This document shows positions 5,901 to 63,890 of a stretch of DNA of 64,000 bases, in pieces. A program made the position numbers and the translations under genes. Each line of letters opens with the position of its first letter. Within the stretch, counting starts at the first letter, position 1. The stretch covers positions 9,548,001 through 9,612,000 of the forward strand of contig OU015567.1 in NCBI GenBank assembly GCA_907165135.1. The letters are read 5' to 3'. This stretch comes from Oikopleura dioica (lineage: Eukaryota; Animalia; Chordata). The notes under the pieces are model-generated. The model was not told where the DNA came from, ran no database searches, and saw only the letters and a list, made by a program, of their open reading frames with translations.

Positions 5901-8900
5901 ATAACAGTACCAAGAATAAGATATTTTAACTTTTTTTAATGTTTCTCTCAACGGTTCGAATTTAAATTACCTGCTTCAGCTTATTTTTGTTAATTGTTCC
6001 CAATAGATGAACAACTCGACGAATTATTTTCTACAACCTCTAACACTAATTAACTCAATGTTCCAAGCGCTTGTTAGACTATTCACTAGAAATTTTCCAC
6101 TGTCGATGTCGAAGATCTTCTTGCTGAGTCACGTGATGAGATTATTTGTTAACAAAACAGCTTATCTATCGCTAGAAATAATGTTTTGGCTCCTGTGGCA
6201 AGGCGGAGAAACAACATCGAATATTATCACAATTATTCTAAATGTGAGGCTTATTTTAGAGGATATGATGTCGCTTTAGAAGGACAGGATTCTTGCGACA
6301 TGTGTACGCCGGCAACATACGACCCGAGTTGGGTTTTGAAGGGTGTGCTCACAATAATCAAATGCTCTCGACGCAGTAAATTTGCTTCATAAATACGCTT
6401 AGGTTAAATTCGTCTTAGTGCTTAGGATCGTTGATAAAACACTTCATCATTCGAAAGAGTAGAGCACTGTTTCATTTGGAGCGAATAATCTTAAGCCTGA
6501 GCAGCTCGAAATTCAGAGCTTGAACTATTGAAGATGCTTCTCTTAATTATCGAGACATCTTTAAAAAATAAGAGCAACGTGAGGAAGTAAAGCGATACAG
6601 AATCTCGGATATGATGTTCGTTGAAAATGCCTTTGAAGCTCTTAAGATTAACCCTGCTCAGTCATCTTCGCGGGTCTAGACACGCGTGGCATGGAGATAT
6701 CTTTTGTCAGCGCTTGACCTGAACATTTTATCTGTATAGAAATGGAAAGGAAGAAAACGTTGCCACTGTTTTTCCTTTGTGTTTTTATAAAAGAAATCTC
6801 ATCACGTTCCTGAAAGGGTCGAAAAGATAATCAGACAAGAAATCTGACATGCGTCGCTTCCCAATAAAACACACTCCCATGCTTTCTTTCTTCATCGCCA
6901 AGTCTCCAAGTCCATGTTCGGTCGCAATCGCTTTCACCACGTTTTTATTCAACGAGCCTAGAGGAAACTCCACTATATTCTGGGTGTTCACTTTGGTCAA
7001 ATCCGAATTACTGTCACTTGTTCAGACAAGTGGAGAAAAATCGCTTACAACATTTTGAAAATTCTTTGGGCGCTTTACAGGAAATTCAGAACTAATCACT
7101 CGTACCAGATTTGAGCAAAATAACCATCAAATATAACATTACCGTGAGTTTGCCCAACATTTTCGCCAAAATGAGTAAATTACTGTTGTAGAAAAAATAA
7201 AGAAATGACCACTGCGAAAAATGATCAACATGCGTGATCAGAGCATGATGACATTTCTGTGGGTACTTATCGCTCCCAATGACAGTCATTTAACTTGGTG
7301 AGCACCCTAATCATTCTCGATCTGTGGCGCGCTAAGCCGTGAGAGATAGAACGTTTGGTCTTTGAGTGAATCGATGGATGGTGGGTTCGCAAATAAGCCC
7401 CTTCGTAGAAGAAGAGCATCTAATGTGGAATGTCTCCTAATTGACACTGCTCCCTTCCGACGAATTTTCGCTTGACTCTTTCTGACTCAGAAAGTATTAA
7501 AACTATGCTAATGCACGAGCGTGATTATAGACGACGCTGACGAGCATTATTATGTCTAACCACTGCTAATTGGAATGACTTTAATTTAAAAACATTGCGA
7601 ACCCACTTCTTGCTGTGGCAATCAGTTTCTGACCTCCCGGTTTCGCCTTCCTCAGACTCGCATAATGCCCCGTCGCTTATAGAGAGGACGCCACTTGATC
7701 AGTTTTTGCCTCCCTGTATAAAAAAGTGAACATTTTCGAATTCTTATTCGAGGGAATCGTAAGGACAAGGAATTTCTAGTACTTTGGGTGTTCGCTAGTT
7801 GGTAATTAGCGGGCTGAGTAAGATACTTATCGCAGTCATGAATGGACCGATTGCGGACATGTAAAAAAGGCACCCTCTGCAATCAATTCAAGAGACATCT
7901 GACTCAGAAAAAATTATGACGGATGAGTTTCTGCTCAATTTTTCGCAAAACGAGCTTTTTAATTCTCTTTTTATCGTGGGCATTAATATGATATAATTAT
8001 ATCCTTGTTTCGCCAGTATTTAACTTGTAAGTCCCTGGTCTTTCCGGAGATACTGCATAAATTCGAATTACGAGAATGAAAAGCAGCCATGATGATAGCA
8101 AAATATCCTTCCGTTGTAAAATGATATCAGAAGAGAAAGTTTGGTTGCTAAATTTGCACTTTGAATTCAACTTGACCAAAATTACATGCCCATCGACCGA
8201 GTAATTCCAGCTCCTTAACTTTAACGAGGCAAATTTTGAAATTTTGCGACCTAAAGCCATTTACTCATATAATTGCGGATATCCGTCACTAGAAGTTCAT
8301 GTTTCAAAAACATAATTATTTTCGATTTCCGATCAGGAGTGGTATTTTACCACAAATAGTTCGTCCCGTCCCGAATCGATCAAAATTAATTTGATTCTTT
8401 GCTAAATGTGAGTTGGACATAATTGAAGAAAGAATGAGTTTTTGTTGTACCTGATTACAGTTGTCCACTTCTCTCAAAGCAATTTGAGCAAATTTAATTA
8501 ATAAATTAATAAGTAAAACTCTTTTCACTGAGGATTCCTCAGAAAATTAAATAGCGAACCTTACGTTGAAATAATCATTATCCAATTAAACATTGTTATT
8601 TTCTAAATTATTTTTTTTTTCAAACGAAACCAAAAAATAATATTTAAAGATCTGTAACGTGTCTTTCCCTGTTTTTCATCAAAACAAAATCCGAATATTA
8701 AATTGTGTCCAAAATAAACTCTGTATTAAAATTTTTAAAAGGAAAATGATCCACTTACAAGAAACATCAATTTTGGCAATAAATTTAATTTCGCAGCGTA
8801 CAAGTCGACGAAAAAAAAGTCCAACCCGTTCCTTTCTTCAGCATCGCATCAAATTTAATCCGCTCATTGCATAGCTTTGTTAGGAATGCAAATTCCTGCC

Positions 8901-11124: not shown

Positions 11125-12527
11125 CTAAAAAGTTCATGAGTAAATAAAATTCATCGAGAATTTAAACAAGGACGCTTTTGATCGATATTTCTTATTCCGA
11201 GAAAAAGCCCTCGTCAAATATTTTTATGAGTTCTTTGGCTCTTTTTTAAAAAGAGATTCTTCGAAGTTCTTTTATTCATAATCACATTCGTCTTCCTTCT
11301 TTTAATGGCTGCCGAAAATCGAAGGTACTGTTCGAAGACAAAGTGTAACGAGGGCAAATTGATTATCGATAGCGTCATTTGACTGAGAGGGGTCAATATT
11401 TTTCTAGCACATTAATAAAACCTGGAGTAATAAGAGAAGAGGATTCTGAAGACATCATGCCCTCGATGACCTCAGATGGTGGTAACGACTGTGCCAAGAT
11501 GGGTCATTCTAAGTCTGCAGCTTCCCTCGAGGGTCAAGCCAGCGGATAGTTGCGCCAGAATGACGTAACACACTCCTAATCCTATTTTTCACAAAAAGAC
11601 CTCTCGTTAGACACTCACATTATTTCGCGAAAAACGAAGTCTGTTGAAAATCCCTTTTCGGGGAGGAAGGACAATCGATAAAGAAGAGCAAATTCGAGAA
11701 AAATTTTTATATCGAGATTCGTAATCGTGAAGCGCCATCGAATCGGAGAGGACAGAAGTTTATGTAATATTTTTGTAAGTAGATAAACTCATCGTATGAG
11801 CGATTATCCAGTAGCCGTTCTAGAGACATTTTAGAATCCTTCCTGCGCGATGATTTGATTAATAGAACTTTCATTTTTTGAACCATTTAAAATGAAAAAA
11901 AAAATACATCGGATTCAAAAAAGATAGTCTAGGTTAGAAGTGCGTGCATAAAAATGTCAAGAATTTTTCACTGAAATTGTGAATTCCGGAATTTGAATAT
12001 CAAGAGCTCACAAGGCTCGGCCATTCCATCTCTCTGATAATTTAAAACTTGGGAGAAATCAAGAGTACAGGGCACTTTTGCCCGCACGTTTTTACTGCAG
12101 ATGATGATCCACGTCCCTCGGAATCACATTAGACGAATCCAATAAAATTCACGAAATTAGCAGGCGGGTGATATTTGAAACCGAATCTGATTTTTACACC
12201 TTTCTAATCCCCTTGCTCAAATGATCAATGAGATTTGCCTTCCCTACCGTTCTAGCGGTTTTTATCTTTTTCTAGCGGTTCCCCCGGAAAAATTTTAAAA
12301 ACAACTGTTTGTTCTGAAACATGCTCTACAAAGTTGACTCATTCAAAGGTGTCTTAAAGCAAGAAGTTACGAAAGATGAGTCCTAAGTCCGACCGATCCC
12401 CGAGTCTTGCTTAATCGCTCGGATCAAATCTATCTACCAAATAAAAGTCTAAGAGGCTTGGATCGTCGTATTAGTGGCTTGAAGATTGTATAACTTGCTG
12501 CTCGCACTGCGTCTGGCTTTTGATCCC

Positions 12528-15500
12528 CGACTACGACCGCAATTGGCCTCTTCCGATGGTTTCTCTCCTTCGTTTGAAACTTGGTCCGTTGGCCCACCGC
12601 AACGCCATAAATCGGAAACGCGCGCTTCCCTGTGTGGAAGTTTAACAAGTCGCATCCCTGTGCTTTTATTTCAGTAGTAAAATATTATTTTAACTGAACG
12701 AGGGTTGACTAATTCAATGTTCACTTTAGTTTGTGGCATGAACTTTATTGGAACTAAGATCATTATTTTAGCCATGTTCAGCTACTCGTAAGAAATTTAA
12801 GAAAGAAACGAATAACAGTACCAAGAATAAGATATTTTAACTTTTTTTAATGTTTCTCTCAACGGTTCGAATTTAAATTACCTGCTTCAGCTTATTTTTG
12901 TTAATTGTTCCCAATAGATGAACAACTCGACGAATTATTTTCTACAACCTCTAACACTAATTAACTCAATGTTCCAAGCGCTTGTTAGACTATTCACTAG
13001 AAATTTTCCACTGTCGATGTCGAAGATCTTCTTGCTGAGTCACGTGATGAGATTATTTGTTAACAAAACAGCTTATCTATCGCTAGAAATAATGTTTTGG
13101 CTCCTGTGGCAAGGCGGAGAAACAACATCGAATATTATCACAATTATTCTAAATGTGAGGCTTATTTTAGAGGATATGATGTCGCTTTAGAAGGACAGGA
13201 TTCTTGCGACATGTGTACGCCGGCAACATACGACCCGAGTTGGGTTTTGAAGGGTGTGCTCACAATAATCAAATGCTCTCGACGCAGTAAATTTGCTTCA
13301 TAAATACGCTTAGGTTAAATTCGTCTTAGTGCTTAGGATCGTTGATAAAACACTTCATCATTCGAAAGAGTAGAGCACTGTTTCATTTGGAGCGAATAAT
13401 CTTAAGCCTGAGCAGCTCGAAATTCAGAGCTTGAACTATTGAAGATGCTTCTCTTAATTATCGAGACATCTTTAAAAAATAAGAGCAACGTGAGGAAGTA
13501 AAGCGATACAGAATCTCGGATATGATGTTCGTTGAAAATGCCTTTGAAGCTCTTAAGATTAACCCTGCTCAGTCATCTTCGCGGGTCTAGACACGCGTGG
13601 CATGGAGATATCTTTTGTCAGCGCTTGACCTGAACATTTTATCTGTATAGAAATGGAAAGGAAGAAAACGTTGCCACTGTTTTTCCTTTGTGTTTTTATA
13701 AAAGAAATCTCATCACGTTCCTGAAAGGGTCGAAAAGATAATCAGACAAGAAATCTGACATGCGTCGCTTCCCAATAAAACACACTCCCATGCTTTCTTT
13801 CTTCATCGCCAAGTCTCCAAGTCCATGTTCGGTCGCAATCGCTTTCACCACGTTTTTATTCAACGAGCCTAGAGGAAACTCCACTATATTCTGGGTGTTC
13901 ACTTTGGTCAAATCCGAATTACTGTCACTTGTTCAGACAAGTGGAGAAAAATCGCTTACAACATTTTGAAAATTCTTTGGGCGCTTTACAGGAAATTCAG
14001 AACTAATCACTCGTACCAGATTTGAGCAAAATAACCATCAAATATAACATTACCGTGAGTTTGCCCAACATTTTCGCCAAAATGAGTAAATTACTGTTGT
14101 AGAAAAAATAAAGAAATGACCACTGCGAAAAATGATCAACATGCGTGATCAGAGCATGATGACATTTCTGTGGGTACTTATCGCTCCCAATGACAGTCAT
14201 TTAACTTGGTGAGCACCCTAATCATTCTCGATCTGTGGCGCGCTAAGCCGTGAGAGATAGAACGTTTGGTCTTTGAGTGAATCGATGGATGGTGGGTTCG
14301 CAAATAAGCCCCTTCGTAGAAGAAGAGCATCTAATGTGGAATGTCTCCTAATTGACACTGCTCCCTTCCGACGAATTTTCGCTTGACTCTTTCTGACTCA
14401 GAAAGTATTAAAACTATGCTAATGCACGAGCGTGATTATAGACGACGCTGACGAGCATTATTATGTCTAACCACTGCTAATTGGAATGACTTTAATTTAA
14501 AAACATTGCGAACCCACTTCTTGCTGTGGCAATCAGTTTCTGACCTCCCGGTTTCGCCTTCCTCAGACTCGCATAATGCCCCGTCGCTTATAGAGAGGAC
14601 GCCACTTGATCAGTTTTTGCCTCCCTGTATAAAAAAGTGAACATTTTCGAATTCTTATTCGAGGGAATCGTAAGGACAAGGAATTTCTAGTACTTTGGGT
14701 GTTCGCTAGTTGGTAATTAGCGGGCTGAGTAAGATACTTATCGCAGTCATGAATGGACCGATTGCGGACATGTAAAAAAGGCACCCTCTGCAATCAATTC
14801 AAGAGACATCTGACTCAGAAAAAAATTATGACGGATGAGTTTCTGCTCAATTTTTTCGCAAAACGAGCTTTTTTAATTCTCTCTTTTTTATCGTGGGCAT
14901 TAATATGATATAATTATATCCTTGTTTCGCCAGTATTTAACTTGTAAGTCCCTGGTCTTTCCGGAGATACTGCATAAATTCGAATTACGAGAATGAAAAG
15001 CAGCCATGATGATAGCAAAATATCCTTCCGTTGTAAAATGATATCAGAAGAGAAAGTTTGGTTGCTAAATTTGCACTTTGAATTCAACTTGACCAAAATT
15101 ACATGCCCATCGACCGAGTAATTCCAGCTCCTTAACTTTAACGAGGCAAATTTTGAAATTTTGCGACCTAAAGCCATTTACTCATATAATTGCGGATATC
15201 CGTCACTAGAAGTTCATGTTTCAAAAACATAATTATTTTCGATTTCCGATCAGGAGTGGTATTTTACCACAAATAGTTCGTCCCGTCCCGAATCGATCAA
15301 AATTAATTTGATTCTTTGCTAAATGTGAGTTGGACATAATTGAAGAAAGAATGAGTTTTTGTTGTACCTGATTACAGTTGTCCACTTCTCTCAAAGCAAT
15401 TTGAGCAAATTTAATTAATAAATTAATAAGTAAAACTCTTTTCACTGAGGATTCCTCAGAAAATTAAATAGCGAACCTTACGTTGAAATAATCATTATCC

Positions 15501-24547: not shown

Positions 24548-26589
24548 TCAGGAGCTCTCTTTTCTACCGACTTCTTGATTTTCTTTCAATTTTGTGAGAG
24601 GCAACCCTGCCCAGTTGAGCTCAGGGCGGGTTTGAATGTGCAAGTGATACAGGCATTTCTTCGCAGCGTCATTTTCAGCATCATCTTGAGATCGTCCTCT
24701 GCCGATGACAGTGATAGGAGGCCGAGTAAAAGTCTTCAAAATGCACTGATACACAGAACGACTGTAAGGACGATTGATATTTGGCTGATTTTCTGAAAGA
24801 TCGAAGGACTGTTTTTGCTTTTCTTCGTCCTCACTTAAATAATTTTATTCGTATAACCGGAACTTCTAGGGTTCCGCACGATCGGAGGACCCAAATTTCA
24901 AAAACCAAAATTAACTATAAGAAATTTTGAAGTTTTAAGTGGGATTGAGGTTTTCGACTATGGCGAAGAAAATGACGATACTTATATTCTGATAACTCTT
25001 AAAATTCGCCGATTTATCTCGGTTTTTCCGGTATATTTCTGTCGCACACGTTCAGTCGCCCTCCCATTTAAAAGAACACCAAAAAATAATAGTTTTTGTT
25101 TTTAAATGAAATTATAACTCAGCGAACTTTTTGTGTGCTGATCAATTAAAGTTTTCAAAACTATTATCATTTTTATTTCCCGCGCGCTGATTGGTCGAAT
25201 TTCTGACTGTGTTGTTCAGATGGAAGAATCTTCAGTCTAGAAAAAGTCGCTTGCGCAGCTGACCAATCAGAGCGCATAAGCCTTTTAAACTTTATATTTT
25301 TAAATAGCTTTAAAATAACCAAAGAAATGGCATTGGGGGGAAACTAGGATCGGATATGGATTCTACTAGTCATTTTTAGTAGAATTTAAAAATTTTGGTA
25401 AATATAAAGTCTCTGTCCGAATCATGCGGAACCCTAGGAACTTCCTATCAGGAGGATGCATAATCAGATGATTTGCTCACCTTTCTGGCAGCTTGATTTC
25501 ATTTTTGCGCTTTAATTTGGGCCACAAAATGACGTACGAGAACTCGACATCCTTTCTGTTCTGGATTTCCTTCAGCTTATCTATCGGTTTCGGCACATAA
25601 TTCCTTAACAATCAAGTTATGAGAGTCCGTCAGACCGATCAATGACCCGCAAACATTGTGGCGCAAAGACAAAGTCCTATAGTTCCCGTGTGACGGCTGC
25701 GTCACAATGCTGATTCGGTAATGGGACAAGTTTAATCTTTCAACAATACCTTGATTCCGCTTCGTCTGTTTTCAAATCCTCGAATTCACCGTCTCTGATT
25801 TCTATGAAACGATTGCATCTGTTTCTGACGCCGTGGCAGAAGAGAATCTCGTCAAACTCCGGCTTTGAGTTCTTATTGTCAGTAACTTCAGCTTGTTTAT
25901 TCTTTGAATCACGATTTTTACGCTCTTGGTCGATTGCGTCTAAAATCAGCTGGGCGCAATTCTTAGCGGCTTGACGTTTTTCTGGAGAATAAGCCATCAA
26001 TACTTTTCCCTAAAGACGGCCCTTTTTAATCTTAAAAAATAACCCAAAATCATACCCTTAAACAGCCAAATTTAACTTTACTCGTATCTTTGAACTTGTA
26101 ATAGTACCGATGAATTTGACAACCCTCTCTCGACGTCATTTCCGAGCCGATTTCATAGTGTTCTTTCTCAACAAGCTTCTTATCTTTAAGGAATTTATCC
26201 ACTTCTCTTTTCGCATCCCCTCGATCCAAATCATATTTACTGCTTGGTAAGACTATGTCCATCAACGCGTCCTGTTCTCGCAGATGGATGAGAATTTTTT
26301 CGCCAAACTGATTTTTTAGCTTCTTCACATCTTTGCCTTTCCACTCTCCAAGAACATTTTCAGAACACTCTTCGAACATCTTCAGATCCTCGAACTCGGA
26401 TCTGCACTCTTTATGCAGTTTGAATTTCAGTTTAGTCTGGCCATCGTTTTCAATCTTTTCTTGGAGCTCGTAGTGCCAGCCGTGTTTTTGGTCCTTATCC
26501 GTTCTTCGAATCAGTGGCGGTTCATTCTTTCTACACCAATCTTCCCATAGTTTGAAGGGTTCTTTTAGCCAGAAATCATTGCTGTTCAT
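24548..26589 (-). CDS. dsRNA-binding protein with a TRBP/PACT/Loqs-like terminal dsRBM, multi-exon
   Basis: The last exon YQCILKTFTRPPITVIGRGRSQDDAENDAAKKCLYHLHI resembles dsRBM3 of PRKRA/TARBP2. The upstream ORFs (25740-26000, 26050-26589) are assigned to the same gene only tentatively. Confidence 0.6.
24867..25436. mobile_element. hAT-family MITE (570 bp), element A, in an intron of the dsRBM gene
   Basis: Imperfect TIRs TAGGGTTCCGCACGATCGGA and TCCGAATCATGCGGAACCCTA. Perfect 8-bp TSD GGAACTTC (24859-24866, 25437-25444). Subterminal homology to elements B and C. Confidence 0.93.
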
Positions 26590-38200: not shown

Positions 38201-41200
38201 ATTGGAATTTCCCTTGACTAATTGATCTAATTTAGAGCCTTTGAGTTCACAGCAATCGTGAAGGAGCGTCGTCTCTGTAAAAGCTGTGCAGAAAATTTTC
38301 ATGGTCGCCAGAACAATTGGCATGAAATCAAGCAGCGAACCGATGCTACCTTCAAGTGTGCTGCCACTCCACAAAGACCATCAGAAGTTGAAGGCTGTGG
38401 TGCAGAGAATCTCACGTACCGCGAGTATATGACAGGAAGCTGCTGCGATAATGCGGCGCGACGACTTCAAGCTGATTTCGAAAATCTGATGTCCGAAGAC
38501 GATCGATACCAGATTTTCAAAATCCTCGAAAAATACTACGACGATGACAAGGAAGATCTCGACGACTCGATTCATAACCTGAATGCCGCGAAAGAAGAGT
38601 CTCGAAAGGCTAAAGAAGAGAAAGACAAAGTTTGCCGAAAAATCAACAACAAGGAAAAAATAAAGGAGCGAATACTGGCCAGACTTGATGGAATTGAAAA
38701 GGAACTTGAAAATGACAAGAAAGATCTTGAAAGCAAGGAAAATCTCTTCAACGCGGCCAAAATGAATGAAGAGTTCAATGATAACCTCACGAAGGAGAAG
38801 CGGAATTCACTCAAACGGCTCGCGAAACCTCTCAATTTCCTTTCTGCAAAAGTCTTCAAGTTCGACCAAGGTAAACTCGATTATCAAAAAATATTTTCAA
38901 TATAAAGGAAGATTAGATGACAATGACACTAAAGGAGAAGCGTCCAAAGCCGCTGATGTCAAAACAGAATATTTCGAAGCTTAGAATCGCTCTATTTTAA
39001 ATTCTAACTTTTACTAGGGTTCCGCACGATTGGACCAAAATTTTTATTTTTAATAAAATTTGGAGATTCTACCAAAAATATGCCTGGGAATTCATTCCTG
39101 GCCTCTGTTTTTCCCGAAAATCCTCCCTTCAGCCCTTTTCAGGGCTTCAAAGTATATTTTGCCAAAGAGGCCTGCTGCACGCTGATTGGCTGGCGCTCTT
39201 CGCGGGAATATAAATCGAGTAATGCAACGAGCTGTCGCCCTGGAGTTGGCTGAGTGGTGAGCGCTTCTCTTCGCAAAGAGGAGATGGCGAGCTCGAAGCC
39301 AGCTCGAACGCACCCCCTTTTCCATGTTTGGCTTTCTAGCTTCAACATGGAAAACGCGGATGGGCCTCGAAAAAGAAAAATTCTTTTTTTGAGTTTCGAG
39401 CTCGTGCCCGTCCGCCAATCCTTTTTGAAGGACTGCGCTCACCACTCGGCCAACAACTATTTGCGGGATGGTTCAGTTTAGCGGATTTTGACTCGAAATT
39501 TCCGGAGTCAAATTTCCGGACATTCGGTGGAAAAATTAAAGAGCTATCATAGATCTTAATTTTGTCAGGAGGGAGTTTTCTTCCTCTTAGGTTTTTTTAA
39601 CAAAATTTTACCTAAAAGTTTTGATCTCGGTCGGAGTTCGCCCTAAAACTGGCTGTATTCCAAGGAATGTTTCCTGTAAACATGCATATTTTATATTTAT
39701 TAAAAGATCCCCCGATTTTCCGAAGTTTCAAAATCTCATTCAAAAGCTCGTCTTTAAATGAGCATATTTTGGTAAAATCAGCTTTCTATCTCAACATTTG
39801 CTTATGTATTAGAGGCCGTCAAATTGTATCTACTTTTATGTGGCCTTTTTAAATGCGAATCTTTTTAAATTGCGAGAAAGTTCAGACCCTAAACTCAATA
39901 TTCTGGAAGAATCAGCATGATCGGGTAAGTGAATAAAAAATTCTAGTTGTAAAACTTTTTGAAACCATTATTGGCGTTTTTTCGGTTTTTAAATGCTCTC
40001 TAGCCCCATTCATTGGCCGAAAATTCTAACGCGGTAATTATATTCGTTGATAAAAATTGAAGCCAAAAATTTTCTCGACAAGATTTCTAGCGCTCGTAAC
40101 TCGAAAACAACAAGTGATAGCAGCTTCTGTTAAATAACAAATGAAATTATGCGTTGAATTCGAACTAATGTCTTTGCGACAAAGTGATTTTCAAAATTTA
40201 TTTTTATAATTCAAAATTTACTGTGGGACAATGACAGATTTTTTAAATTTTCGCGGTATGAGCGCCAGTTCGCGCTGATCTTCCTGTAGGCTTCTTCTTT
40301 TTCTCTCTTCGCGCTGAGTTTTCTGGCTTTTAAAAGCTGCCAACAGCTTTGATTTTGCTTCATGTGGCTTCAGGTCATCAAGCCATTCGTTCAGCTTGTT
40401 GAATTTGGCTCGCCCGTTTTCGTACATCTTTTCGCGGCACAGATTTTGGATTGACTTCTCGAATCCCTTGAGTGTGGCAAAGGACGATTCTTAATTTAAA
40501 TTCAGATATGCTTTATTCAAAAAAGACTTACCGACTGCTCTGTTCGAACAACTTATTTTTCGATCGTCTGGCAAATCGAGATCCTTGAGAAGCCCGAAAT
40601 CCTTCACGTACTTCTTCAAACTTCCACCGACAACAGCAACAGCAACAGTGTTCAGTCGCTTGATTCTTGTTGCGGAAACCTTTTGGAATCTTTCCTCAAT
40701 CAATTCCACGGTTTTTTTAGACTCCTCGGATGAAGACATCAGAGCCGCCTTCTCCAAAAGACACGAATACGGCTCGTTTGAATCAACAATTGTCTTCATT
40801 CGCTGAATTACTGATTGGAACAAATCCTTCAACCCAAGGAAAGACAAGGCTTCGTTGTTCACTTTTGAGATCTTCTTGTGGAAATGATTAATGTTCGCGC
40901 AATAGTTCAGGAACAATGTTGCAGCGTCGAGCAAAACCCCATTATCTCGGCCGGAGCAAAGTTTGTGGATCTGGTGAAATTTGCTGTCCTCAAAGCTTCT
41001 TGCCATCATGTGTTTTGTCGCGTTCATAACCGTCGGGAAATGTCTCACAAGAGCGCCCGAGTTGCGACAGTCATTTCCAAAGCGCTTTCCTATTAATATA
41101 AATTAAGAAAAGTCATTTGAAGGAAAATTACCTAGATCGTGAGAGAAAATCTTTGTTCTGGTGCTTTCCATATCGTATTTGAGCAGCAGCTGTAGCGACC

Positions 41201-44200
41201 GGCGACCATCTTGTTGGACGTACCCAAATTTTTCTGGTTTTCCGAAGACACTCTTCACAAGTTCCAGTAAGGTGAACGCTTCTTCATTGACCTCTTTTAA
41301 CGCACAACGGCTGTTCTTGTCACAATTTGCGACGCAGTGCATCGCACAAAAGAGTGATGGAGGTGCGTCCTTGTTGATTTCCCGCGTCAGTTTTTCTGCA
41401 ACAACCGCGTTTGCGTTGATTTGAGCTGACTGCTGATCTGACATAAGGAGATCAATCTTCTCGCCGATTATTCGTCCCAAACCGGTTTTGTTGACGATCC
41501 CAATCATTTGGTCGGCGATTATCTGACTTGTACCTCCGATCGCAAGCTCGGTCCCGATGAGATGAAGCTTGCCAGACTCGTTTATGAGCCCGACTGAAAT
41601 CGTTTTTGATGCATCCAACATGGCTGCTCCGTCACTCGCGAGGTGGAATCGTTTGCCCTTGAGAATGACGTCTTTGGTGTGCTCTTCGTTCAAATACTTT
41701 AATGAATCTCGAAGTCGCTCAAACCAGTCAGGAGATGGAACTCTTTTTTCTTCGCCAAGAAGCTCGGGATAATACTTCGCTGTCGTTTTGAAGAAGTTGT
41801 GGATGCTGCTTGCGGTTTCTCCTTTTATCAGCATCTCCAGCGATAAGTTGATAAATTTGGGGCTCCAGGTTTTGTTATCTCCACCTTTACCGTAATTTGG
41901 GAGCCATGCGCTACGTAGAAAAATATCGTTTATTCCTCCAACTGCAATTCGTTTTTTCTCATCATTTTCGTTCTCAATTTCTTCTGCTCCTACGACTTCT
42001 ACCATTTCTATGGCTTTTCCAGCTTCTTCATCCTCATCTGATCCCGGCAGCCATTCTTCCTCTTGCTCACTTGAATCTTCAAGAAAAGCTTCATTCATCA
42101 AGCTTTCATTCGCCTCATTCTCTTCGTTGATTTCAGTCGCCTGCAAAACTTGCGACAGCCCAGTTGAACGCTTACCAAGTTCTTTTGCATCGAAATGAAT
42201 GGAATCTTCCTTGCAAAAAAACTCATTGTCGTCACGAAACCAGCGTTCAAGATCTCGCCGAACCTGATTCTTCTTCTTCGCAAGTTTCATCCCCTTTATG
42301 CAGTTGTCAAAGACACACTCAGGTTTCGCCGTGATAATATCTACGAAATTTTAAGCAAAGATCGGCGTATAAAACTTATACCTTCAAGATAAGGAATAAT
42401 CACTCGAGTAAATCCCGAAGAATTTCCGGAATTCTTTTCTGCAATCTTACGCCATTCTTCTGGATTCTCTAGAAGCGCGGAGATATTCTCTTGAGTAAGG
42501 CCCAAAAATCGAAATTTTTGCTCGTTGGCTGGACGATGAGTGGCGCACGGATGAATTTGACGAAACTACTCTTCGAAAAAGAAAACATATTCTTCCGACA
42601 AAAATACGAATAAAGATATCCGAATGATTCGAATTTACGAATGAGATTTCAATTTCCAAAGAGTAAGAGAAAAAAAGAGATCTAGAAAAGCGGAAGTCTT
42701 GAAATCTAGAAAAGATTTGATTCTCGAAAGAATGGAGAGTCTAGAAATTATTGAATACTTATTGTTTCGGAAACTTTCGTCTGAGAAACTTATGGCAGAA
42801 TCTTTTGGTAGACTGATTCTAGAGGTAGATTGCTTATGCATGTCACGGCCCTTAAATTCAAAAATCATGGAAAAGGGCTGAGACGGCCCGAAGTGGAAAA
42901 ACTGTGGAAAAAATTGCGATTATCACGCTCAGTACAATTTATATGCTTTTAACGACTTTTGAGGGCCAGAATTTCGGGTTAAAATGTTCGTAAAGGGGGA
43001 GTGTGATTCAACAAAATGATCCTCAGAATACCGGGAATCTAAACATGCCATAAAGAGACCTGTGATTAAGAGTTGAAAAAACAGGGGAAAATCCCTTAAT
43101 TTCAAAAACCAAGGAGCGAGGGAAGGAGGGGAATCGGCCATTCGGGCCGTCAAGCTCAATTAAAATTCAAGGCGAGGCAAAGGAATTATAACGACGGGCG
43201 GTTGAAAAAATTTTGTACGGGCATGGGCGCCCGCCGAAGACGAAAAACTTTTTCGTTGATTTCAAATTATCCAGCCCTGCGAAAAAGGCAAAGGAATTGA
43301 AAGCTGCGCAAGTTTCAAAAGTTCAAAATCGAAAACTCCCAAAGTGTATGGAACCGAAACGGCGAAAAACGCACTGGGATTATCTTCTGGACGACGTGAA
43401 GTGGATAGCCACGGAATTAACTGGCAAAAGCAAAATGACGCGGCTTTTAGAAGTTATTCGCAAGTGGGGGAATTCTTTAGGCGCGCTTTCTGAGTATCGC
43501 AATATTCTAATGACCATGAAAAACGAGGAAAAGAAGCTCAATCTTCGGCCTCTAACGCCAGACACAGCGGATGATAGATGTTTCGATCAGACGAATCACA
43601 AATCAAAAATCGAGCTATTGGAAGAAGACGCTAAAACTCTCCTGCACATGATTTGCGATTTGGACAAGCTTTACCCGGACGTAAAAGTCAAAAGATCGGA
43701 ACTTCCCAAAATTGCAGAAAAAGACCTTCGCGAAAAAGCAGCGAATCCAAGAACTTCAAATAATCAAAAACATCGAGCACAACTTTCGCTTTGACATTGA
43801 ACTAGCCCAGTACCAGCAACCGCTGATTTTTTTCATTGAAATCGAGTCCTGAGAATGTCTTCCATATCAGCCAATCAGAGCGCACCTCCTCAATTTTCAC
43901 AAAGTGATAAATAGCGGATAATTTTAAATGGACAGCACACAAAAACCTTGATTTTTTTTGCTCTTTTTTCAATAGATTTGTGATTTTTAGAATTGTTTTT
44001 ATCTACTGTGTTAAAGAAAAGTTTGTGCTGCCACTAGAAGTATGAAAAACCGAGAGAAATCGGCGACTCTGATGATGAATCGGAATTTAACTATCATCAT
44101 TTTTTTCGCCGTATTCGAAAACCTAAACTTTATAAAGAGTCTATTCTTAATACAATATGGATCTGGATTTTGAAAAATAAGGTCCTCCAATCGTGCGGAA

Positions 44201-45811
44201 CCCTAACTTTTACTGCCATAGATACCAAATATAAAAAATTGGAAAGCGCTTACCGGACTGTAATTTCCAGCAATTGCGTGGCAATCTTCGGTCCATAAGA
44301 CACCTTTGATTCAATCTTCGTCAGGTCCAGAAGCACATTCAAATACCACTCGAAATTCTTGATAAAAACGAATCCCTGCTGGCTGCACATGTCGATCATC
44401 TTCGAAACTAGCTCATCTCGGTAGATTGTATTTTCAGTCTTTCGTACGTGGTCGAGTAGTTTCGCTGTAATGTCCATTATCGTTGATTTCGTGACCATTT
44501 TACTAAATAAGCTTGGTACAGAAATAGTCAGAAAAGTCAAAAACCTGATGAGGTCTAAAGCTCGAAGCCGAATGCTTTCATCTTTGTCGTCAAGACACGC
44601 AAGAATTATGTCCTTGTGTTGGCTTACAATCTTCGGGTGCGATTCTGAAGGATAATATTCAATAAGGCTCTTTATTTTCTGCTTTTACCAAGAATCCGAG
44701 TCATTGAAAGAAGCCCAAGATACTTCAAATTCTGATCATTATCTTCAATAAGAATTCTAAGCTTATCCACGCAGAGTTGTATCAACGCTTCATTGTCATT
44801 TCCAGCAGGAGCGTATGTCTTCGCCTGGAAAAATAAATAACACTTATTTGACAGCGCGACTGTACCTGAATCAATGTATTGATGCATTCGTATAGCAAGC
44901 TCATTGCGCTGGTATTATTAATTAGCGTCTTCAAATTCTCTTCAATCTTCTTGCCCAGTCTTGGTTCGTGGGGAATCAAGCATCCGAATAATTTGATAAT
45001 TTTAATGAGCACCCAATTATTCGAACTCTTGGTCATCAATCGCATTAAAATCGGGCTCAAGAGCAGGTAGTTCTTTGGATTCTTCCTTGCAAGCTCGCAA
45101 ATGACATTTACAGCGGCAGATTGCACTCCTGGGTCCTTGTCTTCTAGCTTTTCTTTGAGACGAGGCATGGCAGCGCGCATCGCTTCTGGGTAGTGGTAGA
45201 ACAGTTTGTAAGTTATTAATGTAGCGCGTTTTCGAACATGAGGTCGGGTAGATGACATCAGCGAAATGACATCATCGGTCAAGTCTCGGGCAAGATCAGG
45301 CGTCATGAAACAGGATAGACCGCCGAGAGCAGCGCTAGCTTCGAATTCGGAACCTTTGAGGATGTCCTTCTTGATCAAATTCGTTGAGAGCATGAGAACA
45401 TCGGTCTCAGCGTTGAATGATTGAGAGGCAGCCCAGTAGCCCAAGCGCTTTTCGGTCAACTTTTTCGTGGTTTTCATTCGTCAAAAACACGTCCTAACTA
45501 TCATCTAAGTAAATTCAGTAATGAACCAGTTCCTTAGTCGAGGACATAACTTCAATAATATTAAAACTCGCCCAGCCCATCTCATATCCTAGCATGTGAA
45601 GGAAGCAGAGCTTCGAAATCGCCACCGATTTCACATCTAATTTCGGGTTCTTCAGCTCCTCCCTAATTTCCTCGACTGCTTCCAAAATGTACTCGCGTTC
45701 GTGACCTTTTGCGTTTCGAACTCCTCGGACGAGGTCTTGGAGGGTCTTGTCGAAAATGCGGTCGATGCCGGTTTTCACCTTCGACCCAACTTTTTTCATT
45801 GCCACATCCAT
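35223..45811 (-). CDS. AP3D1: AP-3 complex subunit delta
   Basis: IDRIFDKTLQDLVRGVRN, EKRLGYWAASQSF, LKEKLEDKDPGVQSAAVNVICELARKNPKNYL, DNDQNLKYLGLLSM, NFEWYLNVLLDL and AAVICGEF. A 7.06-kb intron (37192-44253) splits LEITVR|VRTLREY in frame. Confidence 0.96.
37470..37850. mobile_element. Mutator (MULE)-type MITE, 381 bp
   Basis: 31-bp perfect TIR GAGTGGTCTCCGTTTGCCCAAGTCGCCGTTT, 9-bp TSD CGATGCGCT (37461-37469, 37851-37859) and internal repeats of CGTTTGCCCAA. Confidence 0.88.
38108..38984 (+). CDS. Cys-rich (degenerate RING/TRAF-type Zn finger) coiled-coil protein nested antisense in the AP3D1 intron
   Basis: CSNC...CKSC...C...C...CC followed by a long E/K coiled coil. GT-AG introns near 38185 and 38870. 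Confidence 0.65.
40218..42841 (-). CDS. Spliced DDE transposase (hAT-like)
   Basis: FHLASDG (D1), LLMSDQ (D2), CAMH (CxxH), and SNRAVESSFA after splicing (catalytic E). Long stop-free exons at 41103-42290, 40491-41048 and 40218-40490. The start codon is uncertain. Confidence 0.8.
43213..43794 (+). CDS. Transposon-borne accessory ORF with an HSA-like motif of EP400/SRCAP/Domino type
   Basis: LPKCMEPKRRKTHWDYLLDDVKWIATE (43336-43416) resembles LPKLQE..RPK.HWDYLLEEM.W.A.D. The track start is TTG and the first in-frame ATG is 43348, so an upstream exon may exist. Confidence 0.7.
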   Translation: MYGHGRPPKTKNFFVDFKLSSPAKKAKELKAAQVSKVQNRKLPKCMEPKRRKTHWDYLLDDVKWIATELTGKSKMTRLLEVIRKWGNSLGALSEYRNILMTMKNEEKKLNLRPLTPDTADDRCFDQTNHKSKIELLEEDAKTLLHMICDLDKLYPDVKVKRSELPKIAEKDLREKAANPRTSNNQKHRAQLSL

Positions 45812-57358: not shown

Positions 57359-58029
57359 ATAACTCCCTGCTTGTTCTTTTTTAAAATACACATAACTTCG
57401 ATATCACCAGACTTTATTTAAATCAGATTCTTCAGGAATAAGAATTTCAAAGCGTTGTATTTGTTCATGGTTAGTAAAGTAACGAATAACGGCACGTATC
57501 TGTTGCTCAGAGATTTTTACAAAGGAAGGGAAGGGTTGAGCTACAGTTAGGTGGAAAAGATCTTCAGAAGAAGATTGTTGAATCTGGGTTGGCCGGCGGC
57601 GTGAAACGGAGGCTGGCGAGGTTCAAAACCGATTGTGAGCTTTGCCAGCCCCGGATTCACGAAAGAGTCACGCAGATGAATCTCGGAGAGTTTCACCACG
57701 TTAGGGGGCGCGCAAGCCTCCGCAGACGAAAATTGCGAATTTTGTTAGTAACTGTTCAAGAAGATAATGTTCAAATGTACTTTTGTACTCAGTAATTGAT
57801 ACCGCGATTTGGTAGAAAGAAAATTGTCTCGTGGGGCACCAGTTATGACATCTGGAGTTCAAATCGAAATTAATCGGAAAAGAAGAGCCTAAGCACTTGT
57901 TCGTTGAAACTCAGAATGTTGGTTTTCATTTTTTTAGTTTTGGTTAAAAGGCTAAAATTTAAAGCGATAGAGAAAATAAAGTAAGAGAGAAAGATAGCTT
58001 TCCCGATAATGACGAGAAAGATCCTCGAT

Positions 58030-61000
58030 TTACATCATTTGTCGGGCGAGAGCGAATCCTCGGCTTTGATCAGTGCCTGGTCCAACTGGCTCTCGGATTT
58101 GAGATACCTGTCGTTTCAAGACCTTAAAATGTTATTTCCTATTTTTGATAAGCTTTTGTACCTTTTCAGTAGCAAAACCAGGGCTAAGCTTTCCTGAGTT
58201 GTCATCTGAGATCTCTGAGAGATTGTCTCCATGTCCAGAATCTTGGCTAAACGAAGAGATAGGATTTCATTGTTAAATATCTAATTTACCAGGAGCCAGA
58301 AATGATAGATTTATCTAGGGTTCCGCACGATTGGAGGACCTTATTTTTCAAAATCCGAATCCTTATTATATCAAAAATAGACTTTGTATAAACTATGGGT
58401 TTTCGAATACGGCGAAAAAAATGATGACAATAATATTCCGATTCACCATCGGAGTCGCCGATTTCTCTCGGTTTTTCATACTTCTAGTGGCAGCACAAAC
58501 TTTTCTTTAACACTGTAGATAGAATCAACCCTAAAAATCACAAATCTGCAAAAACAAATTTAAAAAAATTCAAGGTTTTAATGTGCTGTCCATTTGAAAA
58601 TTATCCATTATTTATCATTATGTGAAAATTGAGGAGGCGCGCTCTGATTGGCTGATGAGGAAGACATTCTCAAGGGTCGATTTGAAGGAAGATTATTCTA
58701 AGCTTCCGCGATTTTGTCCTTGTTGGTGAATAAGCCCTTTCTCGATAAAATTTTAAATAGAAACCATAACAAAGTAAAAATCTTGGATAATTTGACTTTT
58801 AACAACAATGGGTGAGGGCGGGGTTGGGGACATAACTGAGATTGATCACCTCAGAGTCCAACGCCGATCTCAAGCCCCTTAAATTAAAAAATCAAGGAAC
58901 GGGGCTGAAACGGCCCGAAGGGCCGTCAAGCCCCTTAAATTAAAAATCAAGGAACGGGGCTGAAACGGCCCGAAGGGCCGTCAAGCCCCTTAAATTAAAA
59001 ATCAAGGAACGGGGCTGAAACGGCCCGAAGGGCCGTCAAGCCCTTAAATTAAAAATCAAGGAACGGGGCTGAAACGGCCCGAAGGGCCGTCAAGCCCCTT
59101 AAATTAAAAATCAAGGAACGGGGCTGAAACGGCCCGAAGGGCCGTCAAGCCCCTTAAATTAAAAATCAAGGAACGGGGCTGAAACGGCCCGAAGGGCCGT
59201 CAAGCCCCTTAAATTAAAAAATCAAGGAACGGGGCTGAAACGGCCCGAAGGGCCGTCAAGCCCCTTAAATTAAAAATCAAGGAACGGGGCTGAAACGGCC
59301 CGAAGGGCCGTCAAGCCCCTTAAATTAAAAATCAAGGAACGGGGCTGAAACGGCCCGAAGGGCCGTCAAGCCCTTAAATTAAAAATCAAGGAACGGGGCT
59401 GAAACGGCCCGAAGGGCCGTCAAGCCCCTTAAATTAAAATCAAGGAACGGGGCTGAAACGGCCCGAAGGGCCGTCAAGCCCTTAAATTAAAAATCAAGGA
59501 ACGGGGCTGAAACGGCCCGAAGGGCCGTCAAGCCCCTTAAATTAAAAATCAAGGAACGGGGCTGAAACGGCCCGAAGGGCCGTCAAGCCCCTTAAATTAA
59601 AAATCAAGGAACGGGGCTGAAACGGCCCGAAGGGCCGTCAAGCCCCTTAAATTAAAAATCAAGGAACGGGGCTGAAACGGCCCGAAGGGCCGTCAAGCCC
59701 TTAAATTAAAAATCAAGGAACGGGGCTGAAACGGCCCGAAGGGCCGTCAAGCCCTTAAATTAAAAATCAAGGAACGGGGCTGAAACGGCCCGAAGGGCCG
59801 TCAAGCCCCTTAAATTAAAAATCAAGGAACGGGGCTGAAACGGCCCGAAGGGCCGTCAAGCCCCTTAAATTAAAAATCAAGGAACGGGGCTGAAACGGCC
59901 CGAAGGGCCGTCAAGCCCCTTAAATTAAAAATCAAGGAACGGGGCTGAAACGGCCCGAAGGGCCGTCAAGCCCTTAAATTAAAAATCAAGGAACGGGGCT
60001 GAAACGGCCCGAAGGGCCGTCAAGCCCCTTAAATTAAAAAATCAAGGAACGGGGCTGAAACGGCCCGAAGGGCCGTCAAGCCCCTTAAATTAAAAATCAA
60101 GGAACGGGGCTGAAACGGCCCGAAGGGCCGTCAAGCCCCTTAAATTAAAAATCAAGGAACGGGGCTGAAACGGCCCGAAGGGCCGTCAAGCCCCTTAAAT
60201 TAAAAAATCAAGGAACGGGGCTGAAACGGCCCGAAGGGCCGTCAAGCCCCTTAAATTAAAATCAAGGAACGGGGCTGAAACGGCCCGAAGGGCCGTCAAG
60301 CCCCTTAAATTAAAAAATCAAGGAACGGGGCTGAAACGGCCCGAAGGGCCGTCAAGCCCCTTAAATTAAAAATCAAGGAACGGGGCTGAAACGGCCCGAA
60401 GGGCCGTCAAGCCCCTTAAATTAAAAATCAAGGAACGGGGCTGAAACGGCCCGAAGGGCCGTCAAGCCCCTTAAATTAAAAAATCAAGGAACGGGGCTGA
60501 AACGGCCCGAAGGGCCGTCAAGCCCCTTAAATTAAAAAATCAAGGAACGGGGCTGAAACGGCCCGAAGGGCCGTCAAGCCCCTTAAATTAAAAAATCAAG
60601 GAACGGGGCTGAAACGGCCCGAAGGGCCGTCAAGCCCCTTAAATTAAAAAATCAAGGAACGGGGCTGAAACGGCCCGAAGGGCCGTCAAGCCCCTTAAAT
60701 TAAAAAATCAAGGAACGGGGCTGAAACGGCCCGAAGGGCCGTCAAGCCCTTAAATTAAAAATCAAGGAACGGGGCTGAAACGGCCCGAAGGGCCGTCAAG
60801 CCCTTAAATTAAAAATCAAGGAACGGGGCTGAAACGGCCCGAAGGGCCGTCAAGCCCTTAAATTAAAAATCAAGGAACGGGGCTGAAACGGCCCGAAGGG
60901 CCGTCAAGCCCCTTAAATTAAAAATCAAGGAACGGGGCTGAAACGGCCCGAAGGGCCGTCAAGCCCCTTAAATTAAAAAATCAAGGAACGGGGCTGAAAC

Positions 61001-63890
61001 GGCCCGAAGGGCCGTCAAGCCCCTTAAATTAAAAATCAAGGAACGGGGCTGAAACGGCCCGAAGGGCCGTCAAGCCCCTTAAATTAAAAATCAAGGAACG
61101 GGGCTGAAACGGCCCGAAGGGCCGTCAAGCCCCTTAAATTAAAATCAAGGAACGGGGCTGAAACGGCCCGAAGGGCCGTCAAGCCCCTTAAATTAAAAAA
61201 TCAAGGAACGGGGCTGAAACGGCCCGAAGGGCCGTCAAGCCCTTAAATTAAAAAATCAAGGAACGGGGCTGAAACGGCCCGAAGGGCCGTCAAGCCCTTA
61301 AATTAAAAAATCAAGGAACGGGGCTGAAACGGCCCGAAGGGCCGTCAAGCCCTTAAATTAAAAATCAAGGAACGGGGCTGAAACGGCCCGAAGGGCCGTC
61401 AAGCCCCTTAAATTAAAAATCAAGGAACGGGGCTGAAACGGCCCGAAGGGCCGTCAAGCCCCTTAAATTAAAAAATCAAGGAACGGGGCTGAAACGGCCC
61501 GAAGGGCCGTCAAGCCCCTTAAATTAAAATCAAGGAACGGGGCTGAAACGGCCCGAAGGGCCGTCAAGCCCCTTAAATTAAAAATCAAGGAACGGGGCTG
61601 AAACGGCCCGAAGGGCCGTCAAGCCCTTAAATTAAAAATCAAGGAACGGGGCTGAAACGGCCCGAAGGGCCGTCAAGCCCCTTAAATTAAAAATCAAGGA
61701 ACGGGGCTGAAACGGCCCGAAGGGCCGTCAAGCCCCTTAAATTAAAAATCAAGGAACGGGGCTGAAACGGCCCGAAGGGCCGTCAAGCCCCTTAAATTAA
61801 AAATCAAGGAACGGGGCTGAAACGGCCCGAAGGGCCGTCAAGCCCCTTAAATTAAAAATCAAGGAACGGGGCTGAAACGGCCCGAAGGGCCGTCAAGCCC
61901 CTTAAATTAAAAAATCAATGAACGGGGCTGAAATGGCCATCCGTGTTTTCCAAGCTAGAAAGCTTTTGAAAAAAATGAGACACGGGTTGGATTCGAGCTC
62001 GCCATCTCGTCTGCGCGAAGAGAAGCGCTCACCACTCAGCCAACTCCAGGGTGACAGCGCAGTGCAGTACTCGATTCATATTCCCGCGAAGAGCGCCAGC
62101 CAATCAGCGCGCAGCAGGCCTCCTTGGCAAAATATACTTTGAAGCCCTTAAAAGGGCTGAAGGGGGATTTTCTGGAAAAACAGAGGCCAGGAATGAATTT
62201 CTAGGCATTATTTTGGTGGAATCTCCAAATTTTATTAAAATGAAAAATTTTGGTCCAATCGTGCGGAACCCTAGATTTATCGTCAGAAATAGAAGAACCA
62301 TCGTCAGATCCAAGCTTGCCCTGAGCAGCAAGTCGATCTTGTCTGTAAAGAGTTCTTCGCATTCGCGGTCCCAAAAGGGCCAATCTCATTCCAGTTTCAC
62401 TGAATAAAAACTTTAACCAGCCGTTGTTATCTTTTCCGGACTCACCAGAAATTCTCTTTGAGCTCTCTGACAGCCTTGAGGGCTGCTTCAGAGCTTTCAA
62501 AATCAACGACGGCGCAGAGGCTGTCTCCAATGTCCGGCACTTGGGTGGCGTAGTTGCGCAAGTCAGAAGGAACCTCCTTGCCTGGCCGGAGGAGTCGGAC
62601 GAGGCCGATGTCTCCGTACTCGCGGAACATGGTGGTGATCTGGTCAACGCTGTCGAACTCTGGAGGCACTCGGATCGCAACAACAGAAGTGAGCAGTCTT
62701 GGCTTTCGGAGGGTTTCCGGAAGGATGTCTCGTCGTTTGACACGGTACCCTTGAAGTAAAGACGTTATATCACGTTTATGGTCACTTTTGTTTTTCCGAA
62801 ATTTTGAGGTCTTTTTAGATTTCTATATTTTTATTATTCCAAAAATGAAAAATTTGGAAAAAAATATAAACACCAATTTTAACAGGCTTTTATGGTTATT
62901 TCTTAATCAATCATTACCTTCAGGTGAAACCTCCAGCTGCGGAGCTAATTTGAGAGCATGTCGAACAACTCGCCAGTCTCTTGTGAGCTTTTTGACCTTT
63001 TTGAAGCTTGTCATAAGCTTTTTTCTTGGTTCACAACTGAGCTTCTGTACTTAATTGATGTTGAATAAGAATAAATTTGCTAAAAAACTTCGAGAAATAA
63101 AAGTTAGGAACCATTCCTTGATGGAGATATAGCCCTCGGATTTGCATCGGATTTGTCGGAGGAGATATTTGTCTTTGGCAAGGTACTCGTCGGAAAGATA
63201 ATACTCCACCTGATCGATGATAGCTTCTGATTCTTCCTGAGTTGGCGCGTCGTAGTCGCCCTCGTCCGAGTACTGGATCACACCGGAATCATTCGACGAG
63301 CCACCTAGTTTTCAAAACAGTTACAATCTGGGGATTAGAAGATAGGAGCATCAGCGACTGATGCTGAACCTGATTCTCCAGAGTTGCGACGCTGTCGTGG
63401 AGATTTTGAGTTGTCGTTGATGCGCATGCGCTCTGCTTGTTGAGCGATTTCCTCAATCTCAGCAAGTTGAATGCTGCCGCGTTGCTTGATTGGGACGTAT
63501 TTGTTCTGAACAAGAAAGGTTATTTCATTTCCTTCGAACCATGTTCAATAGTGCTAGGCCTCATGATGAGCATTTTATCAAATCATTAAAATTCAGTTTT
63601 TTTCCTTACTCTCATTATTGGCGCGCTCTTATGGTGTTTACCTTTGAGGGAGATTTTCTTCCTCGTGAGTTTGATTTCTTGCCGCTGGAGTTGATAGAGT
63701 CACGTGAGTCGATGGAACTGTTGTGTGATTCAGTGCGAACGAGACCTTCGCCGTTGTGGCCCAGGAAAGCATCGGGATGGCCTCCTGCTGGGATAAAGAC
63801 GGGAATTTGTTCGGCTGGCCAGGGCATGAAGGGGTGATGGGGGCTCGGATGGGCCGAGTATGCTGGCACGAAGCCTCCCACAGGAGCATA
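58030..63890 (-). CDS. LARP6: La-related protein 6 (Acheron), 5' end beyond the resolved region, interrupted by element C
   Basis: La motif QVEYYLSDEYLAKDKYLL...GYISIK...LMTSFKKVKKLTRDWR, RRM YGDIGLVRLLRPGKEVP...CAVVDFE, and C-terminal LSA-like IREPVGPGTDQSRGF ending at the stop at 58030. Confidence 0.92.
58316..62273. mobile_element. Non-autonomous hAT derivative (3958 bp), element C, inverted relative to B
   Basis: Same 20-bp TIR and 8-bp TSD GATTTATC (58308-58315, 62274-62281). About 370 bp at each end is homologous to the opposite ends of B. Confidence 0.96.
58871..61934. repeat. Tandem satellite, about 55 copies of a 54-56-bp unit
   Basis: Unit CAAGCCCCTTAAATTAAAAATCAAGGAACGGGGCTGAAACGGCCCGAAGGGCCGT. 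Copies differ almost only in C- and A-run length. Confidence 0.98.

Follow-up and report, generated by a model that had tools for sequence, protein, structure and literature searches.

The question raised by this locus is whether a satellite array lying inside a transposon was born there or was brought in from elsewhere. The locus is part of a 64,000-nt stretch of the Oikopleura dioica genome (assembly GCA_907165135.1, contig OU015567.1, positions 9,548,001 to 9,612,000 of the forward strand), referred to below as the window, and coordinates without a locus name are positions in it. A transposon, element C, carries in its interior a long array of a 55-bp unit, and a second, transposase-bearing transposon, element B, contains degenerate copies related to the same unit. 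The original prediction was that the satellite had been born from a regulatory region of the transposon. The part of this that stood is that the array lies within an intact hAT-type element and that the motifs in B are genuinely related to the unit; the unit itself, however, is a genome-wide, high-copy repeat. We consider it probable that C took up a leader and satellite cassette as cargo, and that its array afterwards grew and was homogenised in situ.

The satellite array and its carrier

A single large array was detected in the window by Tandem Repeats Finder, at 58870-61938 on the plus strand, with a period of 55, 55.8 copies and 98% matches. Cutting at the unit starts gave 55 full units and a diverged terminal unit of 46 nt (61893-61938), in agreement with the earlier count of about 55 near-perfect units. 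Differences among the 55 full units were confined to homopolymer length (CCC/CCCC and A4/A5/A6), with no substitutions; the terminal unit had two substitutions and was the sole unit with any. The window sequence is from a Nanopore-based assembly, and these length differences are possibly read noise, such that the actual units may not differ at all. Every unit junction is spanned by the palindrome CGGCCC-GAA-GGGCCG, nested in GGGGC...GCCCC, and a unit dimer gave a folding energy of -24 kcal/mol, compared with -14 ± 2.5 kcal/mol for shuffled sequences (z = -4). The unit has stops in every frame, the longest open stretch being 31 aa. No match to the unit was found in metagenomes scanned with a degenerate 44-mer and then a 24-mer, or in a scan of viral contigs; a handful of marine metatranscriptomes contained words of the array, at a low share.

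The array is bounded by element C (58316-62273, 3958 bp), a non-autonomous hAT-type transposon without a transposase open reading frame (ORF), which was delimited by its terminal inverted repeats (TIRs), target-site duplication (TSD) and arm homology. The TIRs, TAGGGTTCCGCACGAT, were perfect over 20 bp (58316-58335 and 62254-62273), and the 8-bp TSD, GATTTATC, was also perfect (58308-58315 and 62274-62281), confirming that the ends of C are intact. Element B (39015-44205, plus strand, 5191 bp) is a transposase-bearing hAT-type element with the TSD ACTTTTAC at 39007-39014 and 44206-44213. Positions 1-375 of C matched positions 5191-4818 of B at 87.5% in reverse, and positions 3673-3958 matched 287-1 of B at 92% in reverse, so that the orientation of C is opposite to that of B. 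Since the arms match B in reverse and no ORF of at least 60 aa was found in the interior of C, C is a non-autonomous derivative, inverted relative to B, which like Ds has both arms in common with a transposase-bearing element and lacks a transposase of its own.

Between the ends of C, the following order was observed. The left arm (58316-58690, minus strand), 87.5% identical to the right arm of B (44205-43832), contains a CCAAT-like motif at 58640-58652 and is separated by a 56-bp stretch (58691-58746) from the leader; no counterpart of this stretch was found in B or the fetched loci. The leader, or pre-array flank (58747-58869, plus strand), is homologous to a sequence in locus L001 described below, and its core from about 58784 is multi-copy in reads. 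The array follows, and then the right arm (61939-62273, minus strand), which corresponds to the left arm of B from 39015 to about 39365 and has a CCAAT-like motif at 62099-62111; BLAST gave 92% over 287 bp for this arm, and alignment extended the homology to about 39365. At the right junction the last unit passes into homology to the left subterminal region of B, the switch being at a GGCC common to the unit and the hAT arm.

Abundance of the unit and the leader

For three DNA runs of O. dioica (X1, X3 and X5), Logan contigs were placed on 57800-59000, a region including the flank, left arm, leader and 2.4 units. The summed word depth of the single-copy flank was 7.5 in X1, 145 in X3 and 74 in X5. 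In the array bins the depth was 23,000-58,000 (X1), 0.56-1.22 million (X3) and 0.78-1.5 million (X5), or 3,000-7,800, 3,900-8,400 and 10,600-20,400 times that of the flank, respectively. Leader bins had depths of 203-661 (X1), 3,791-7,714 (X3) and 7,640-34,191 (X5), with ratios to the flank at 58784-58865 of about 27-88, 26-53 and 104-463, while the ratios for the hAT arm were about 1-11, about 1-11 and 6-38. The leader and the unit are thus both commoner than the hAT arm of C. Read as orders of magnitude, these depths put the unit in the thousands of copies across the genome and the leader, likewise a repeat, in the tens or more; being a head-to-tail tandem array of a genome-abundant unit, the array is a satellite.

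Distinct contigs placed numbered 1,640 (X1), 3,791 (X3) and 10,259 (X5), mostly on the 2.4 units at 90-100% identity. These thousands of variant contigs indicate a source larger than one homogeneous array of 56 units. Loose contig ends at 58857 and 58870 represent further variants of the leader joined to the unit.

Copies of the unit outside element C

A second copy of the leader and unit was found in L001, a locus on the Y-specific region OU015570.1, where positions 13458-13630 matched 58747-58919 of the window (leader and first unit) at 83% over 174 bp (E = 5e-40). The L001 monomer is 94% identical to the unit and is preceded by 123 bp homologous to the pre-array flank of C. The leader and monomer lie 2.1 kb outside the hAT copy of L001, within a 783-bp element (L001:13139-13921) that has 29-nt inverted repeats (TACCGAGAGCGAC...) at its ends and is possibly flanked by TA. 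The 29-nt repeats show no relation to the TAGGG TIR, and a motif containing GGTCCTCC occurs twice inside this element.

In B, sequences related to the unit are located on the plus strand in the interval separating the transposase gene from ORF2, which are oriented divergently. Seed 1 (42842-42893) is one monomer, 86.5% identical to the array consensus along 52 bp (E = 6e-11 in a search of the window) and 90% identical to the L001 monomer, and it terminates at CGGCCCGAAG, without a second hairpin arm. Seeds 2 and 3 together form a decayed ~1.4-mer (43092-43172) that contains a unit-to-unit junction, and this is read as the relic of a short array in B. The local alignment scores, 67 for seed 1 and 48 for seeds 2 and 3, were compared with dinucleotide-shuffle nulls of 14.8 ± 2.4 and 17.2 ± 3.0, and 0 of 300 shuffles reached the score in either case, indicating that the degenerate copies proposed for B are genuine. 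The orientation difference that had been reported was also observed: matches between array and seeds are plus/plus, those between the element ends plus/minus, so that array and seeds are opposite to each other relative to the element ends.

The seeds of B are without a leader like that preceding the array of C. They lie, together with ORF2, in a B-specific segment at about 42690-43847 that does not align with the copies on the Y-specific region and is missing from both transposase-bearing copies there (L001:6675-11333 and L002:6381-10876). At L002:599-806, the 210-bp spacer between the seeds is kept at 70% and the seeds are absent. As far as sampled, therefore, the seeds do not appear to be a character of the family; unit monomers were seen within two transposons, B and the 783-bp element of L001, and were absent from the other sampled hAT copies.

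The monomers of seed 1 and L001 both stop just past the first hairpin arm, at CGGCCCGAA(G). The array of C also ends inside the first arm, and the second arm, GGGCCG, is present only where two units abut. Such ends would fit the hairpin as a preferred point of strand dissociation and re-annealing, and would also fit fold-back copying in the first duplication.

Origin of the array

The uptake of the cassette by C, which we favour, could have occurred as follows. A hAT copy would have lost its interior and gained the leader (~80-120 bp) and satellite by template switch during repair of an excision gap, with the GGCC common to the unit and the hAT arm as the switch point on the right. The array would then have grown and been homogenised in place through out-of-register synthesis, by replication slippage or synthesis-dependent strand annealing, which the GC hairpin at the unit junctions would favour, and each later excision would re-expose the array to such repair. 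Transposition of C into the exon of a LARP-type gene (see below) would have been recent. The motifs in B would be older relics of the unit family in an accessory segment specific to B, kept or acquired independently; with such an independent history, the opposite orientation would need no inversion, and the internal inversion suggested previously would become unnecessary.

Several points weigh against this explanation. Besides C, only one cassette copy, that of L001, was seen directly, the search having covered the fetched loci. The microhomology at the array/hAT junction, GGCC, is only 4 bp, and the length and homogeneity of the array rest on a Nanopore-based assembly. A monomer with the ends described above could equally be a progenitor or a collapsed array, and transfer may have run from transposon to satellite or from satellite to transposon. 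With regard to the reads, summed word depth gives an order of magnitude and not a copy number; hAT relatives with arms more than 10% different escape placement, and arrays inside TAGGG-type elements may therefore be more numerous than estimated from arm depth. A high-copy organellar or extrachromosomal source may also contribute to the depth of the unit. As a particular case, the mitochondrial control region of O. dioica was considered and judged an improbable source; it is described as dominated by A/T homopolymers (PMC11384890), which misfits the unit.

Birth of the satellite in the hAT lineage, from a B-like intergenic (regulatory) region that was inverted, amplified in a deletion derivative and spread by hAT mobilisation, agrees with the highly significant seeds between the divergent transposase gene and ORF2, with the 1.4-mer as a sign of a short array once present in B, and with C as a bona fide deletion derivative of the hAT family. 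We nevertheless regard it as unlikely. It is B that lacks the C-type leader and the non-hAT element of L001 that has leader and unit at higher identity, the two other transposase-bearing copies have no seeds, leader and unit are far commoner in reads than the hAT arm, and an extra inversion step is required. The intergenic seeds of B were accordingly not upheld as the source, given the closer, 94% identical copy with leader outside hAT. The presence of that copy inside the 783-bp element could mean that the cassette is native to an L001-type element (29-nt TIRs, possibly TA-flanked), which inserted in a hAT copy and later lost its termini, along with the hAT interior, through deletions. There is a small chance of this; the termini and other internal sequence of the L001 element are absent from C, and a single such element was seen.

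The remaining two alternatives concern the maintenance and the reality of the array rather than its source. The strong hairpin potential of the units, the insertion of C within the coding exon of a gene that appears functional, and the array words in the marine metatranscriptomes would be in line with an array kept for function, be it as a hairpin or small RNA, in removal of the element from the LARP transcript, or in a chromatin or centromere-like role. This is very unlikely in our estimation, as Rfam returned nothing meaningful on element C or on the 783-bp element of L001, RNA depth on C was zero (in one run, of a divergent lineage), and no subterminal hAT motif was found in the unit. The conserved CCAAT-like motif is absent from the unit, which has only A-rich low-complexity k-mers in common with the arms, and this argues against the suggestion that the units multiply binding sites for the transposase. 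That the array owes its size and perfect homogeneity to a Nanopore-consensus artefact, produced over a shorter or more heterogeneous repeat, is hardly credible. The unit differences are all in homopolymer length, a typical Nanopore error, and the array is too long to be spanned by short-read contigs; however, the unit, the leader-unit junction and both arms were found in independent short-read contigs from several individuals, and the array is bounded by unique junctions inside an element with matching TSDs.

Comparison with known systems

In the Ac/Ds system of maize, non-autonomous hAT elements arise by abortive gap repair with filler DNA. As in this textbook case, B and C represent an autonomous-type element and an internally replaced derivative that share their ends only, with 8-bp TSDs, TAGGG/CAGGG-type TIRs and microhomology at junctions. 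This is different from Ds in that Ds filler is usually unique DNA and not a satellite array of kilobases; in addition, the transposase of B is too diverged for any Pfam hAT model.

Transposon-borne satellites are well documented, and the principle is not new. The bivalve MITEs (miniature transposable elements with inverted repeats; DTC84 of Donax trunculus, PMC3879986, and the pearl/CvA type) are likewise non-autonomous TIR elements of modular build, with arms, a flank module and a central array, whose units double as a genomic satellite and whose modules are common to several element families. Their arrays have up to about 5 units, compared with 56 in C; they belong to another superfamily, and there is no evidence of insertion in a coding exon for them. 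The foldback transposon Tetris of Drosophila virilis, a paradigm of a transposable element supplying the building blocks of satellite DNA, also has internal tandem repeats that are an abundant satellite (PMC4079207). In Tetris, the repeats are in long foldback TIRs and the direction from transposon to satellite was argued from a genome census, whereas in C they form the interior cargo of an element with short hAT TIRs, and the direction may have been either.

The O. dioica genome is 65-70 Mb, and no high-copy tandem repeat marking its centromeres has been found (PMC8008620); the 55-bp family, at thousands of copies in reads, stands against this background. The 55-bp repeat is unmentioned in the O. 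dioica genome papers PMC8008620 and PMC11067885. A leader and unit module in two elements with different termini provides a clean system for the capture and spread of satellites by cut-and-paste elements. In a more far-reaching form, for which the odds are low, the cassette would be a discrete module passed between, and disseminated by, several mutually unrelated families of TIR transposons in this genome, the most compact of any chordate, and its copies might include the repeat not found at the Okinawa centromere gaps. If true, transposons would be a vehicle seeding satellite arrays genome-wide, coding exons included.

The hAT family and its transposase

The 16-mer TAGGGTTCCGCACGAT has six copies in the window, compared with 0.25 expected by chance, and they form three inverted pairs. 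These copies are at all six ends of elements A, B and C with 0-1 mismatch, representing short TIRs of the (C/T)AG type, and the 8-bp TSDs of all three elements are perfect. Element A (24867-25436, 570 bp) is a MITE that belongs to this TIR family and has the TSD GGAACTTC; no satellite unit was found in it. Each subterminal arm of the three elements has a single copy of a CCAAT-box-like motif, GCCAATCAG(A/C)GCG, the two in an element forming an inverted pair (25183, 25262, 39178, 43870, 58640 and 62099). Including these six, the window has 8 matches to the motif, compared with 0.19 expected; it is a candidate transposase or NF-Y site.

The transposase gene of B is at 40221-42290 on the minus strand, and its frame is intact after removal of two 42-nt introns (41090-41131 and 40490-40531) with canonical GT..AG borders. 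Both in-frame stops lie inside these introns, and a pseudogenised transposase was rejected for this reason. The spliced frame is collinear with P0004, a 607-aa homolog from Norwegian O. dioica, with 47% identity. As the frame is intact and collinear with P0004, B is plausibly autonomous. Matches of the B product include O. dioica OKI2018_I69 proteins, and the locus of the one with 99% identity contains B itself, which assigns the window to chr2. Other annotated OKI2018_I69 proteins of this transposase family were found only on the Y-specific region OU015570.1, in L001 and L002; within 11 kb, L002 contains one copy of 4.5 kb, a derivative of 1.2 kb and one more fragment. The locus of a Norwegian O. 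dioica relative (L004) showed no similarity to B in nucleotide sequence and contained neither a TAGGG TIR nor the unit.

No Pfam match was obtained for P0002, P0004, P0007 and ten remote relatives, and no hAT model, including Dimer_Tnp_hAT, zf-BED and DUF659/DUF4371, matched the ORFs of B by sequence; language-model scores of 0.78-0.84 were the sole sequence leads to hAT models. A profile search with the transposase found 159 relatives among 1.84 billion representatives and nothing among the PDB sequences. A first structure model built from 7 sequences had a predicted local distance difference test (pLDDT) value of 44, too poor for use. An AlphaFold model of P0004 with 50 relatives aligned had a pLDDT of 77, with the core above 90, and in Foldseek its top 11 PDB matches were all Hermes, with E values down to 7e-7, followed by the P element transposase (3e-5). 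These matches agree with the Hermes-type plan of an RNase-H-like DDE core that is interrupted by a large alpha-helical insertion. Hermes transposase (PDB 4D1Q and 2BW3) was the best structural match, with a probability of 1.0 and 400-440 aligned columns at E = 7e-7, whereas the modelled transposase shares only 12% identity with it, the TM-scores are modest (0.30-0.43), and BED and hAT-dimerisation Pfam matches are lacking. On the strength of the predicted Hermes-like fold, the TAGGG termini and the 8-bp TSD, the A, B and C family can be soundly assigned to the hAT superfamily. The transposase family (P0004 and P0007-P0154) is a sequence-divergent hAT clade missed by current domain models.

ORF2 of B (43213-43794, plus strand) encodes 193 aa with an HSA-like motif. 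The Pfam HSA match (E = 1.3e-4, 22.7 bits) is just below the 23-bit cut-off, and no homologs of ORF2 were found among 5.8 billion proteins.

Insertion of element C into a coding exon

When C and one copy of its TSD were removed in silico, a continuous minus-strand reading frame was obtained. In the flanks of C at 62282-63281 (minus strand), upstream exons of this host gene encode a La domain (63051-63281, E = 1.5e-12) and an RRM (62442-62669), indicating that in the Okinawa lineage C sits in a coding exon of a LARP-type gene with La and RRM domains. In one RNA run of a divergent O. dioica lineage (90-95% alike), 461 reads continued from 58315 straight into the sequence after the right TSD of C; the divergent lineage therefore has, or expresses, an uninterrupted exon. 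The same run gave zero reads on C, which, for a single run of a divergent lineage, is uninformative on whether C is transcribed or spliced out in the Okinawa strain. A 4-kb satellite-filled element in a LARP coding exon bears on the tolerance of this genome for insertions, possibly via splicing.

Contigs of the DNA runs break exactly at the insertion boundary of C. The flank contigs of X1 and X3 end exactly at 58315 and not some 30 nt into the TIR, a hint of a branch between filled and empty sites. The perfect TIRs and TSD would fit a recent insertion, and mobility of C appears plausible.

Elsewhere in the window, at least two 300-bp stretches (families D3 and D4) of 4866-8267 recur with 100% identity in 11777-15184, 6911-6917 bp further on, which suggests either a tandem duplication of ~6.9 kb or a duplication in the assembly.

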